Source: Lepidodermella squamata
Lineage: Eukaryota; Animalia; Gastrotricha
Reading direction: 5' to 3'
Assembly (NCBI GenBank): GCA_047495785.1
Contig: JBLDXI010000024.1
Location: forward strand, 2,108,001-2,172,000
DNA length: 64,000 nucleotides
Part shown: positions 12,850-18,498 of the stretch, one piece after another
Layout of the letters: every line of letters starts with the position of its first letter
Position numbering within the stretch: the first letter of the stretch is position 1
Position numbers and translations under genes: made by a program
Notes under the pieces: model-generated
Told to the model about the DNA's origin: nothing
Databases searched by the model: none
What the model saw: the letters and a program-made list of their open reading frames with translations, nothing else

Positions 12850-13646
12850 AATTCGAAAACATAATATACTGGGAAATCAGTTGCTTGAGCCTCGAGTTTA
12901 GAGCTGAAACCTTGAATTTAAGTTGAATTTCAGGCTTCAACTTGTGATATTTATGGTTTATGCGTACCAATAAGCTGTTTAAAATGAAGGAGACGTACGG
13001 CTGGCGGATTGAAATTATATTCGGCGCTATTTTCGCCATTGCTCAATGCATCGGGCTGTACTTCAGCCCGGAGAGCCCGCGATGGTTGATCGGCAAGGGC
13101 CTCGATGATAGGGCTCGCGAGGCCCTGCAGGCGCTGCGCGAATGCGGCGATGTCGAGGAGGAGCTGTTCGCCATCAAGGAAACGCATCAGGAGCTCGAAA
13201 ATGAGCGAATGCAAAGATGTAAGACTTTTTTGGAGATTTTTATGAAAAAATTTGGGTTGCTAAAGCGTCTTTGAATTTTTCCTGAGAATTCAAATTTTGA
13301 GAAAAATTTTGAATGTATGAAGAAACGCTCAAAGAATCTAAATATTTACTCCATAGACTTTATGATTCCAGCCCTTAATCATTTAGGCGTCTTGATGGCA
13401 CTAAATTTTTCCGATCTTTAGCGATTTCAGCTTTTTCAATTCTTATCGATTATCTCAGCTGGGTACACTCGGCTTCCAAGACTTCTGATACTATCGGAAA
13501 AATCACTGAAATCTCTAGAATCGATAATTGGAATCGATATAGGCTCTGGAGGCTAAGGTCTAATTGAGCTGGGGAAGGAGCGAAATTCGAAAATAATATT
13601 TTTGTAAAAATAATTTACCTTTTAGCTTCAAATTTAGCGCTGGAAC
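12850..13646 (+). repeat. Left arm of a decayed inverted duplication of the SLC2A13 region
   Basis: About 12850-12968 matches the reverse complement of about 25405-25510, and 12974-13646 matches the reverse complement of about 22445-23125. Confidence 0.85.
12974..13218 (+). pseudogene. Orphan copy of the 3' part of SLC2A13-like exon 2
   Basis: LFKMKETYGWRIEII...ELENERMQR is almost identical to the 22881-23125 translation and keeps the GTAAG donor; no upstream or downstream exons. Confidence 0.85.
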
Positions 13647-13889
13647 CATAGACAATGATACATCTAATACAGTGTCAAAAGAACCGCCGGGTCATGGCCT
13701 ACACTTTGCCGTCGACGCATCGTTGACCAGAAAAAAAGGACTTTTCGACAGACCCAGGATTTGGATCTAAATATCGGATCTCGCTGTCTATTTTTGGCAG
13801 TTTAAGTGTTAAAGCTAGGTGCCTGCTATTCATACTCATGCAAGAAGCAAGCTGGCTGGCTGGATTCACCGAATTACTGAATATTTCAT

Positions 13890-15030
13890 CCTATAATTAT
13901 AATAGTTATATTTAAGCCTCTTCTAGACTGAGCGTCATTTACCGTTTCCGGTTTTGAAGAGGGCGAAGGCAGGCAAAGAGAAATTCTTACCCACCCCCAC
14001 AGTTGAAGATCTTGCTTTTTCCGAAAAATTCATAGTTATCAATCGAGTTAACAATCATGCGCCATTCATCTTTTTCAAAAGACACCATTTCAGCTAGTTA
14101 AAAATCGGGTATAATTTTGATTTCAAACTCCTTTTCGCCGGATTTTTCCTTACCTTTTTTCTTTGGCGTTTTGCCCTTCTTATCCTTGGCCTCATTTTTA
14201 GTGCTAGTTTTCTTTTTCCGGCGTAATTCCTAAGTCAGTCCTACTTTAATCAAACTTCTATGCACTCCGTGGATCCATCTAGTTCGGGGTCGTCCTCTAG
14301 GTGCAAACCATCCCAACGGAGGCGTCCAAATATAAATTTTGATAATTAGTCCTTCTTCGTCGTAGTCACGTGATCTAACGATGTGTCCGAAGTACCTTAA
14401 CCGTTGTTTTTCAACTATGCGGCTCACTTCAATGAGACCTCCGTATAGAGCCAACCTTATATCTATGTTAGGAATGTAGTCCATTAAGTGGACACCTACT
14501 ATTGATCGGAGCCATCGATATTCTATAGTGTTTAGTCTATTTTCTTGGGCTACCGATATGTTCCATGATTCGCACGCGTAAATGATAGTAGGTATTACAA
14601 CACATGTCAATACCTTAAGTTTTGTTGCTATGGAAACCTGATTTTTGTTGCACATGAATTTATTCATGGCTTCGAAAACACTGCCCGCTTTAGAAATCCT
14701 ATAGTTCAGTTCCTCTTCGATTTTGCCGTCACTAGTAATAATACTGCCTAAATATTTGAATTTCGTCACTTTTTCAAGTTTTTTCCCGTTTAGTTCCAAT
14801 TCGTAATTTTGTGCAGCCGACTCGTCCTTAGAAATAATCATATATTGAGTTTTTGCCACGTTTATTTTCAAACCCAATTCGGTGCAAGCCAAATCGAAAA
14901 TATTAAGTAGTCGTGAAATTTCGTCGTGATTCATGCCTAAAAGTGTTCCGTCGTCAGCAAACGCTAGTAAATTTAGAAAATCAGTCTCGCTCATACCGGT
15001 CTCACTGTTTGCGGTCTCGCTAATAGGAAA
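13890..15030 (-). mobile_element. 5'-truncated, decayed RTE-clade non-LTR retrotransposon (RT C-terminal part)
   Basis: ORF 14230-14994 has LLAFADD, GLKINVAKT, KFKYLGS, IIYACESW, RLRYFGHIVR and RGRPRTRW; the frame continues through two stops to EKDEWRMIV, typical of an RTE ORF end. Confidence 0.8.
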
Positions 15031-16239
15031 GCCTATCTTTCAGCTGCTATTTTTTCGCAAATTTTGTTGCGGATTTTCTAAATAGAAATCCGATAAAATC
15101 CAGACAATAAAGCGGCGCCAGGAGCCAGCGGAATCATTGCCTGGATCGGTCAGATCTAAAACAGTGGCTTCTGAATCTCCGTTGAGTTCTGTCCATTCAA
15201 TCCCCAATCATATCGGAACCGGCTCTACGAAAGCCAATAATTTAATTTTTAAGCCCGGCATTTTTCAGCCCCAAATTAGCCTTTGAACTCAAAAGTTCAG
15301 AAATAAAAACGTTTTAAAATTCTGTAACGATTCACCGCTGAAAATTGCAGAGTAAATGCGCAAGTGGGGGCAACCCAGCATTGAAAACTTGAAAAAGCCA
15401 ACCACGAAGCTTTGCAACACAAAATTACATAATTATTTAAATTAATTAAAAATATTAAGTCTAACTTTGTAGCTTCGTTTTATTTTACACTTGGGTCGCA
15501 GGAAAACGCGTTTGAAACTTCGAAGTTCCATCGGTTTTAAATTTCGCTCTGGTCATTTGAACAGAATATTCGTACTCCTTTTTGTGCACACCGCCAAATG
15601 TTATCAACTTCTTTTAAATGTTCATTCACCAGCTGAGCATCTTATCGCTATGTGTCTTTTCTCTATCCATCATTTTGATTGCTCTGTCATTTCTAAAATT
15701 AATTTAAGCTCTTCCACTCATTGGGCGGATTTTAGCTAATAACTGGCCATCAATAGACTGATTTGTTTATTGAAGTGATTTTTCCGGGCACGCGACCCGA
15801 AAAGCAAACAATTAAGATGAGTCATATTGTGACATATAAATGTATGCTGGCTAGCCAGACCTATCCCTAAATCACTCCACAACAAACAGCTTTGCGTTGC
15901 TTCAATTCACAAATAAAGAACCACTTGCAATATATTATATTTCAGCCATTAAATAACCTTCTTTTTTTCTCATGCCACGTTAATAAATTTATTACCAAGA
16001 AAATGATCCATTGACCCCGCGAGAGAATAATAAGAATCCCTATCCATGGATATTGAACAAAACTTATCTTATGATGATTACTCCTTAACTTTTACTTCAC
16101 TGTTGTATATAGAGACGGGCTCGTAAAGCTTACTAATGAGGGTTTACCTTAAGACAGCTAGATATGCCACTTGGGTAATTGAGGGCGTCCTCAGTTTATT
16201 GGCACCATAACGCATTGTTTTTCTATAGTCTTTGTTAAA

Positions 16240-17676
16240 ATGGTTGAACCAGATAAAGAGAAAGGCAGTTTTGTTGTTGTAATTCATGGCTTTGCCGACG
16301 ACGATTGCAAAATTAAATGGAAGTTCAGCGGCAAATTATTTAAAGAAAAAAGGGGTACATGGCTAAAACGAAACGTGACGACGGCGGAGTACTCTTCCGA
16401 GCCATTTCGTTTAGAAATTGAGTCAGACAGTGGTAAATACGTCACTGATGAAATTTCGAGCTCGGTGGTCATTGACCTCAAACAAGGAAAGGAGGCTACC
16501 CACAAGGAACTGGATCTATCTACACCGTATGGGAAACAGCTTTTCCATCAAGTCAAGACGTTGCGCGACTTTCGAACGGGCGACGGTAGCTTCTTCTCTA
16601 TATTTCCGAATCTTGGGCAAGGAGACGACTTCGACGAGGTTGAATTGGAAATACGATATCAACAAGTAAGCTAATTAGTCATTCCCTTTTCTATGTTAAC
16701 GGGTTGCTATACTGCAGGCGCGAAGTGATACTATTGAAACATGCGTATCCAAAGCCTACCTTTTCCTTTTGCAAGAGGCATACGAAACCCTCCGGGATAA
16801 AGCTCGCCGAGATGAGCATGTTAAGAATGGGCGACGGAAGTACTTCACTAAGGCGCACTGGAAACGTAAATGGCAGCGTATCCAGCGTTTGCCGTGGTAT
16901 TGGCAGTGGGTCATTCCGGTGGCTGCTGGAGTTGGTGTGGTTTGCTTCGGAGTTGCAGCTGTCCCTTCTGGAGGAGTGAGTATCGCGCTTGCAGGAATCG
17001 GAGGGGCTTGCATTGCTGCGTTCATGACAGTAGCTGGAACCGGCATGAGTGAAGAGTTTTCGACGCTAGATGCAACCGAACAGGACAAGGCTATGGCTGT
17101 TAGAGTTGTTATGTCTATCCTATTTGGTGGAATAGCCGGAGCATTGTCTGCCTTCGTGAGCCCTATGCTTGCAACTGTTTTCGAAGGCGCCGGTGTTATC
17201 TCGAATTGGGCTTGTGGATTCGCGATAGGAATTTGCACTGCTGTTGATACGATATTACTGAACCTCGGTTTGTTCTTTTAAAACAAAGTTAGATGAACAG
17301 CAACATAATATATTTCATTTGTTTTTAATCTATAGGAAACTTCATTGCAGACAAGATTCTTCCTTATGGATCCGATGGCACCCCTTTGTGGAAACAGCTG
17401 TTGTCAAATTTCATCATTGCTCCTATCGCCGCTGGTTGCTTTGGGATTTTAGCTGGCGCCGCCGGAGAATCTCTCGGGCAGTTCATTTGTGAAAGAGGAG
17501 TTATCGACGATATTATTGCAGTCTTTGCTACGGTGCGTCCTAATTGGTTGGGTAATCTCTTCACGGGGATTGGTACTTTTTTCACGATGACGCTCCCGAA
17601 ATTGGTTTGCCTAAAAAGTATTAAAGCTGTAGGTTCAGGCTTTAAGACTTATCTTAAGAATCTCCTGAGACTTTAA
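16240..17676 (+). CDS. Uncharacterised 438-aa protein: soluble N-terminal domain plus glycine-rich hydrophobic helices (pore-former/ApoL-like motif)
   Basis: Exons 16240-16665, 16718-17267, 17336-17676 splice in frame; AAAATGG start context; probable 5'UTR intron 16175-16228; AATAAA at 17771. Confidence 0.7.
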
Positions 17677-17853
17677 GGCTTCCTCAAGAATTGTATTTTT
17701 GATTCACTTACGTGATATTTTGCGACTGATGCAACTTCAAATGTATTAAGTGGTGTTTTTGCCGATAACAAATAAATGAGAAGACACTTTTGTTTTGGAA
17801 ATCATTATTTTAATAGTAAATTATGTATAAGCATCATAATCCTATTCTCATAG

Positions 17854-18281
17854 GCAGGCGATGAAATGCGTACACATAAAGCAAAAAACTTGAAAGAAAA
17901 CTTGGTCAAATTTGTGAATTCATCGAGGAACAAATTCGAAAATGCTCCAGCGATTTGCCGCTAACGCCCTCTATTGAGGCTTTGAATGCTGAATATTCGC
18001 AGTGGCAGGAATGCTTGTCTCAATTAGTCGCAATGGAAGCATTACTGAGTTCAGCTGAAGGGGAACTGAAAGATTTGCAGAAGGATAGCTCAAGCGGAAA
18101 AGTCAAGTTGGGCGAAGCTGATAGCCAACTCGATTCGCTCAAAAAAGAATCAATAGCTATTGCGGATGAAAGATCTCGTTTGGAAAACTTCACTCTTGTC
18201 GCCAATGTCTCTCTCCAGGCAAATCGAGATGAGATGACGAAGCTGAATTCGGAACTCGCGGAAAGGGCCGTGAGCGAAAAG
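17854..18281 (+). pseudogene. Isolated, decayed coiled-coil exon (captured gene fragment)
   Basis: AG acceptor at 17852-17853 and AAG|GTAAGG donor at 18282; heptad-rich frame SKKLERKL...SELAERAVSEK with in-frame stops near the 5' end. Confidence 0.5.
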
Positions 18282-18498
18282 GTAAGGAGGAGGCTTATCA
18301 AAAGCAGTTCGGCACAATTGATCAAATCGATCAAATCAATCGATCGATGGCTGGAACAGTGGGAACTTCATCTATGGCCACGCTGCCCATTGTATCCGAC
18401 ATTATATCTATGGCTGGAACCAACGAATTTAGGGTGCATTTCGGGCCCAATCTTGTGTAATTATGGTTGCCATAATATAGGCCTTATCTTGCAGCCTA

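Follow-up and report, generated by a model that had tools for sequence, protein, structure and literature searches.

How does a complete, three-exon host gene come to lie between the ends of a DNA transposon? The question is raised by a locus of the gastrotrich Lepidodermella squamata (assembly GCA_047495785.1, contig JBLDXI010000024.1). The window analysed here is a stretch of 64,000 nucleotides of this contig (C24:2108001-2172000), and positions given below refer to the window unless they carry a contig prefix. Within it, a segment of 4766 bp (13647-18412) that starts with CATAGA and ends with TCTATG stands between two copies of the 8-bp direct repeat GCTGGAAC. The segment is a genuine insertion with clean boundaries, it is associated with a transposon, and the host gene within it is intact. 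The question is then whether it arrived as a loaded element or was filled on the spot.

An insertion with its empty site in the same window

The window holds four units of tRNA-Ala(CGC) and tRNA-Leu(CAA), and an alignment of these four units defines the insertion. The interrupted copy (unit 1) is sister to unit 2 at approximately 22.1-23.1 kb, to which it is related by an inverted duplication with ~90-96% identity over ~1 kb and 92-96% when taken block by block; the flanking units differ by ~6-8%. The left copy of the direct repeat (13639-13646) is the target-site duplication and the right copy is read at 18413-18420, neither being assigned to a strand. In the empty sites the sequence is present only once, namely as GTTCCAGC at 22446-22453 (minus strand) in the sister unit and at 25461-25468 (minus strand) in the more distant unit 3, which serves as outgroup. 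Because the empty site is found in the same window, the boundaries are resolved to the single base. The initial annotation had described the same 4766-bp segment between 8-bp direct repeats with inverted CATAGA ends, and its coordinates are correct. It had also pointed to an empty target in the parental copy: the uninterrupted site is indeed present, one position away from where it had been placed (22446-22453, not 22445-22452).

Since the sister unit and the more distant unit 3 are both uninterrupted, the segment was inserted into unit 1 after the duplication, rather than deleted elsewhere. Deletion between short direct repeats can imitate an empty site, and the junctions are read from the assembly; an ancestral segment precisely deleted via the 8-9-nt repeats in the other units, or junctions that are an assembly artefact, are explanations to be weighed at this point. 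We regard them as very improbable. The sister unit and the outgroup unit share an identical uninterrupted site, such that two identical deletions would be needed, and the left boundary coincides with a transposon terminus (see below). With respect to an artefact, one public run, which may be the source sample, contains 68% of the sampled words of the stretch.

The length of the duplication can be read in several ways. The repeat common to the filled and the empty site comprises 9 nt, GCTGGAACC, if position 13647 is counted, and the repeat between the two junctions comprises 10 nt. Since the first base of GCTGGAACC is G and its last is C, the inverted match of the ends extends to 7 nt (flanking C/G included), and the duplication parses as 6, 7, 8 or 9 bp according to the base that is taken as the start of the element. 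The chance of a 6-bp inverted match at boundaries that are set independently by the empty site is approximately 2-5 in 10,000. Directly after the repeat, the filled unit shows a derived change beside the junction, AACG at 18422-18425 (no strand assigned) versus TTG in both empty copies in the alignment of the four units.

The insertion occupies a tRNA spacer, and the tRNA-Ala(CGC) gene of the repeated target unit lies 78 bp downstream of it (18499-18570, plus strand). The ~1-kb inverted duplication as a whole pairs 12969-13646 and 18421-18744 with 22152-23130, the arms being 3.4 kb apart when the insertion is left out, and spans both tRNA genes as well as an open stretch that resembles part of a coding exon. 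The tRNA-Ala/tRNA-Leu pair is also found at 25.1 and 37.7 kb of the window.

A low-copy family defined by its terminus

The left end of the insertion (13647-13665, plus strand) matches the family terminal repeat CATAGACAATAATACA in 15 of 16 positions and a copy on contig C34 (L062) in 18 of 19, and the match begins exactly at the boundary set by the empty site. In the genome (121 Mb in 151 contigs, the scope of all genome searches reported here), CATAGACAATAATACA has 16 further exact copies, where ~0.06 are expected. Allowing for at most one mismatch, CATAGACAATRATACA occurs at 29 sites genome-wide versus 6 with a reversed control, and CCATAGACAATAATACA was found at two unrelated places in a scan of fetched loci. 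Four pairs of CATAGACAATAATACA stand in the orientation of terminal inverted repeats (TIRs) and enclose between 7 bp and 6.4 kb: C32:441881-441919 (39 bp), C42:618625-618978 (354 bp), C60:432819-435064 (2246 bp) and C15:2047221-2053634 (6414 bp). A low-copy transposon family defined by the 16-19-nt terminus (C)CATAGACAATAATACA exists in this genome. Beyond 17-19 nt, the readable copies (L038 and L062) have nothing in common with each other or with the insertion, and a low-copy family whose members share only ~17 nt is worth classifying.

Whole-genome searches with the terminal 22 nt of both ends (at most three mismatches) returned extra matches at chance level only. The conclusion of single-copy ends drawn from these searches was dropped, as the family members share only 16-19 nt. 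The initial annotation had proposed a search for paired ends and had named single-copy, never paired ends as the outcome that would speak against a transposon; instead, the left terminal 16-mer has multiple copies, some of which form inverted pairs that differ in internal length. Its description of the segment as bounded by a transposon terminus and a target duplication stands.

The right end corresponds less well. Its terminal 13 nt, CATTATATCTATG (18400-18412, plus strand), are unmatched in the paralogs of the adjoining exon, and the last 7 nt, including the next G, equal the family terminus. These 7 nt (TCTATGG) form a perfect inverted match that is followed by 12 of 14 with one gap, and they could equally be native to the exon.

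As to the superfamily, hAT elements are characterized by YARNG termini, an 8-bp duplication with nTnnnnAn preference and a transposase with a hAT dimerisation domain, and P elements by the terminal motif CANRG (Repbase classification) and a 7-8-bp target duplication. An 8-bp duplication with CATAG, which fits CANRG, is one valid parse of the ends described here. All five readable ends have an extra C before CATAGAC, and the terminus may be CCATAG with a 6-bp duplication. The genome contains P-type transposase genes (six PF12017 matches) as well as at least 30 matches to the hAT-dimer domain (PF05699). None of these six and 30 matches is found in or near any terminus site, including the 6.4-kb pair on C15, a search that weaker or divergent transposases could escape. 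In the C60 pair, the left flank has no match to the right flank GGTGTGTGATT, either over 8 bp with at most two mismatches or over any exact 4-10 bp, a result for one pair only.

The likeness to the P superfamily (Drosophila P element, THAP9-type) thus consists of a possible 8-bp duplication, the fit of CATAG to CANRG and the P-type transposase genes of the genome. The differences are that no P-type transposase lies by these termini, that the element may start with CCATAG, that the duplication may be read as anything from 6 to 9 bp, with none of 4-10 bp seen at the C60 pair, and that the members share no subterminal sequence. The family may belong to the P superfamily, a possibility and not a finding; the identification as a P-like element in the initial annotation is not upheld. 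The same applies to an autonomous THAP9/P or hAT transposase with the same termini, for which it had suggested a search: no PF12017 or PF05699 match lies in or near the paired elements. Judged by its motifs, the element would fit hAT worse than P: the third position of CATAG is T, position 2 of GCTGGAAC is C instead of T, and none of the 30 PF05699 matches is in a paired element.

Several members and transposase loci merit description in their own right. The 6.4-kb copy on C15 is a candidate autonomous element, but without a PF12017 or PF05699 match. The 2246-bp paired element on C60 (L038, C60:432909-436072) is filled with nested foldback repeats. At C29:2070618-2070643, TCTATC precedes the terminus, resulting in TCTAT-CC-ATAGA, which comes close to a head-to-head joining of two ends. 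Among the P-type loci, L065 (C25:65584-68793) and L066/L078 (C46:545302-551546) are 99.8% identical over >3.5 kb, including all of the 3.2 kb retrieved, a sign that they were active or duplicated very recently; no element ends are defined for them. On C46 a hAT-dimer match is located 3 kb downstream of the P-type locus on the same strand. A further P-type lineage (C24/C66) consists of two copies only, with homology through the whole query and likewise no defined element ends.

The cargo, the right junction and a proposed origin

Ordinary host DNA, in a single contiguous piece, fills the 4.7 kb between the ends. The boundaries of this cargo are arbitrary with regard to genomic features: the left cut lies inside a miniature inverted-repeat transposable element (MITE), of which one foldback arm remains in the direction from inner to outer end (13666-13812, plus strand; genome search) while the other arm and the loop are missing, and the right cut breaks off an exon partway. 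The five longest frames contain no transposase domain when compared to Pfam, the only enzyme match being a reverse transcriptase (RT) fragment. This agrees with the initial annotation, which had reported a segment that lacks a transposase and carries host genes.

The gene region of the insertion spans 16146-18399. The intact cargo gene (16240-17676, plus strand) encodes a hydrophobic orphan protein of 438 codons in three open exons (16240-16665, 16718-17267 and 17336-17676), separated by GT-AG introns of 52 and 68 nt; the initial annotation had listed an intact spliced gene. The exons, searched one by one, match no Pfam family and have no convincing atlas relative above threshold. The sole other copy of the gene is located ~130 kb away on the same contig (L042/L043, C24:2245979-2255359) and has a frameshift in exon 1 and ~5 kb interrupting exon 2. 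This paralog is a pseudogene; therefore the copy inside the insertion is the only intact one in the assembly. Between the cargo gene and its paralog, the synonymous divergence (dS) is 0.32-0.38 and the ratio of nonsynonymous to synonymous divergence (dN/dS) is 0.4-0.6. One public run, possibly of RNA, contains 26% of the sampled words of the stretch, approximately the size of the cargo mRNA, which is a hint only.

The second coding piece (17890-18399, plus strand) is an exon of a neighbouring gene that is truncated mid-exon by the insertion boundary and has a 10-bp frameshifting deletion versus both of its paralogs. The paralogs continue for ~170 nt to a splice donor; here the exon stops 13 nt before the insertion end. 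The 'orphan exon' that had been listed as separate cargo is thus a 3'-truncated, frameshifted piece of this neighbouring gene. Paralogs of the cargo gene family, with 79-82% identity, are found on the same contig at a distance of 80-130 kb. The unique parts of the insertion have a single full match, and no copy with >82% identity to them is present elsewhere in the assembly. A donor 'scar' was searched for in the genome, as was a third copy of the part that the truncated exon lacks; neither was found. The two paralogs of this exon (C24:2201473-2203501 and C24:2230905-2238051) are themselves part of a local segmental duplication, with 93% identity downstream, and one of them is split by ~5 kb.

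Evidence on the origin comes from the right junction. Its 15-mer, ATCTATG+GCTGGAAC, recurs inside the cargo as the 11-nt motif ATGGCTGGAAC (18347-18357), 63 nt upstream, and the 9-nt motif ATCTATGGC (18370-18378), 36 nt upstream, which jointly repeat it on the plus strand (18347-18378). Both motifs are native to the exon, because the paralogs carry ATGGCTGGAAC identically and ATCTATGGC with one change. All three ATGs are in the reading frame of the exon, within a Ser-Met-Ala motif. A double match of this kind is found at 0.1% of random window positions, mostly in simple repeats. The microhomology favours repair over transposition: nothing would lead a transposase, when it inserts an element already formed, to pick a target that resembles the element's own subterminal exon, whereas a repair process in search of microhomology would be led to just such a target.

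With a confidence that is evenly balanced, we interpret the insertion as a single-copy 'Pack-TIR'—host DNA between the ends of a TIR transposon—made by in-situ, microhomology-guided capture inside a small resident element. In this scenario, a very small member of the family (the genome has others of 39 bp and 354 bp) would have landed 78 bp upstream of the tRNA-Ala gene, and its insertion would have produced the duplication. The small, palindrome-like element would later have broken or stalled replication, and the break would have been repaired by copying or capturing 4.7 kb from a gene-family locus, probably on the same chromosome. Microhomology of the recipient's right end and duplication (ATCTATG+GCTGGAAC) to the two motifs of the donor exon would have guided the repair back: a small resident member would read ...TCTATG GCTGGAAC, and hence offer the sequence that the donor exon matches. 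The product, with one good and one eroded end, is probably immobile. The hairpin-prone members of 39 bp and 354 bp, the eroded right terminus and the cluster of changes just beyond the repeat are consistent with such a capture. That the element moves host genes, as the initial annotation had it, finds no support in a single-copy segment whose right end is a poor terminus and whose microhomology at the junction speaks for capture in place rather than for movement of a loaded element.

A number of points weigh against this scenario. Copying should leave a donor, yet nothing in the assembly exceeds 82% identity to the unique parts, and the nearest paralog (dS 0.32-0.38) is far older than the event as dated by the flanking units (~6-8% divergent). 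The donor would therefore have to be lost, unassembled, or physically moved as a captured fragment. The microhomology motifs are located 36-63 nt inside the cargo and not at the breakpoint, and the exact switch points are beyond reconstruction. The captured 4.7 kb are far longer than typical captured fragments (median 224 bp, PMC8277862), and no allele that consists of the mini-element only was seen. Finally, no target duplication of 4-10 bp was seen around the C60 pair.

The missing donor is also what a cut-and-paste event predicts, and leads to the main alternative, a true mobile Pack element. Here the chunk would have been acquired earlier, and the loaded 4.77-kb element would have been excised elsewhere and inserted at this site by a family transposase (P-like or other), with the degenerate right end as its second terminus. 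The good left terminus (15/16) with a perfect duplication, the 7-nt perfect inverted match with 12/14 and a gap further in, the long divergence of the cargo from its only paralog, the very different interiors of the family members and the P-type transposases of the genome all agree with this. However, a mobile element leaves unexplained why the native exon by the right end repeats both the terminal 9-mer and the 11 nt made up of the target 8-mer and the terminal ATG. Moreover, the right end makes a poor terminus, the termini have no linked transposase gene, the derived change lies outside the duplication, and the segment is single-copy: there are no further cargo copies with other target duplications, the unique parts having one full genome match. 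We consider a mobile Pack element possible, albeit unlikely. Its most far-reaching form would be that termini of 17 nt suffice for a putative transposase of the family, P-like or of a new kind, and that the 4.77-kb element did transpose with its load; in an animal genome, a DNA transposon would then both house and transport a lineage-specific membrane-protein gene, in its sole intact copy and complete with upstream region and introns. This we hold to be rather doubtful.

The same junction evidence can be read without any transposon. A one-off repair insertion, i.e., filler DNA or template switching at a staggered break, would account for boundaries that are arbitrary with respect to MITE and exon, for the junction microhomology and the nearby mutation, and for the uniqueness of the two 22-nt ends; that the left 16-mer matches the family would then be a coincidence or a legacy of the donor DNA. 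A match of 15/16 (18/19) to a multi-copy terminus, exactly at an independently set boundary, is extremely unlikely by chance, and staggered breaks of 8-9 nt are not usual from repair alone. We therefore consider a transposon-independent origin improbable, and retain the in-situ capture inside a resident element as the most likely interpretation of the locus.

The remaining constituents of the interior are repeats. The foldback/MITE family to which the left arm belongs (L032-L040) has arms of ~160 bp that end with ...CAGTTAAAGTGTTAA and comprises at least 40 scored copies, which are frequently arranged in pairs of inverted arms with 190-350 bp between them; the TTAA at the outer edge of the arms suggests a TTAA or TA target. 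Positions 13893-15069 (minus strand) hold a 5'-truncated, RTE-like fragment of a non-long-terminal-repeat retrotransposon with an (ATT)n tail and an RVT_1 domain, whose best other copy is 97% identical. It corresponds to the RTE fragment of the initial annotation, and a target duplication around it was looked for and none was found. Retroposition of the whole segment mediated by this element was rejected: the introns are kept, the RTE piece is internal, and the (ATT)n tail of its family is absent from both ends of the insertion. Positions 15429-15751 (plus strand) are part of a dispersed repeat family of ~720 bp, with 71-80% identity to 11 fetched copies. A 72-bp repeat at 15773-15844 (plus strand; genome search) is probably the terminus of another small DNA element; elsewhere (L058-L060) it occurs in inverted pairs ~620 bp apart.

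Relation to known gene-carrying transposons

That DNA transposons take up host DNA is well documented for plants, and surveys have been made in animals. To our knowledge, what is taken up is nearly always a short fragment, and coding cargo with a function is very rare. The insertion described here shows the features by which Pack-TIR and Pack-TYPE elements are recognized, namely a host-derived interior (repeats and a gene family), no transposase, transposon ends and a target duplication.

The closest comparison is with animal Pack-TIRs. Most of these exist in a single copy and arose through gap filling independent of transposition, with breakpoint microhomology and a bias towards the same chromosome (Tan et al. 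2021, Nat Commun 12:4280; PMC8277862). The median length of their captured fragments is 224 bp, and the survey pipeline required an identifiable parental copy (PMC8277862). The insertion resembles them in that non-transposon host sequence lies within the ends of a TIR transposon, in a single copy, with relatives of the cargo on the same chromosome and microhomology associated with a breakpoint, such that an origin by gap filling or template switching fits best. It differs in its cargo of 4.7 kb, which includes a complete open three-exon gene and its upstream region; in the lack of an identifiable parental copy, nothing in the assembly exceeding 82% identity; and in the retained transposon parts, which amount to only ~19 nt and at most 13 nt.

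A second comparison is with the Pack-MULE and Pack-TYPE elements of plants (PMC8903248; PMC5861414), which are likewise non-autonomous, have the termini of a family and a target duplication, and contain host DNA that they captured. These are, however, usually multicopy, with long terminal repeats and duplications of 9 bp (MULE) or 3 bp (CACTA), and form mosaics of small gene fragments from several loci, whereas the insertion consists of one contiguous chunk with short termini in a single copy.

A third comparison concerns mechanism. Repair of gaps left by P-element or Ac/Ds excision with ectopic filler, as well as fork stalling and template switching (FoSTeS) and microhomology-mediated break-induced replication (MMBIR), share with the proposed origin a break, at a transposon, that is repaired from an ectopic template, leaving terminal remnants, microhomology and local mutations near the junctions. 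For these processes, the demonstrations came from experiments or pedigrees in which the template was still present; at this locus it is missing, and we infer the process from its product.

With a complete open gene, the only other copy of which is broken, and a signature at the junction that is relevant to the mode of capture, the locus is a good natural example for the choice between a gap-filling and a transposition origin. Animals were already known to have gene-carrying elements of this sort, to which the insertion adds a Pack-TIR with an unusually large, complete cargo and an informative junction.

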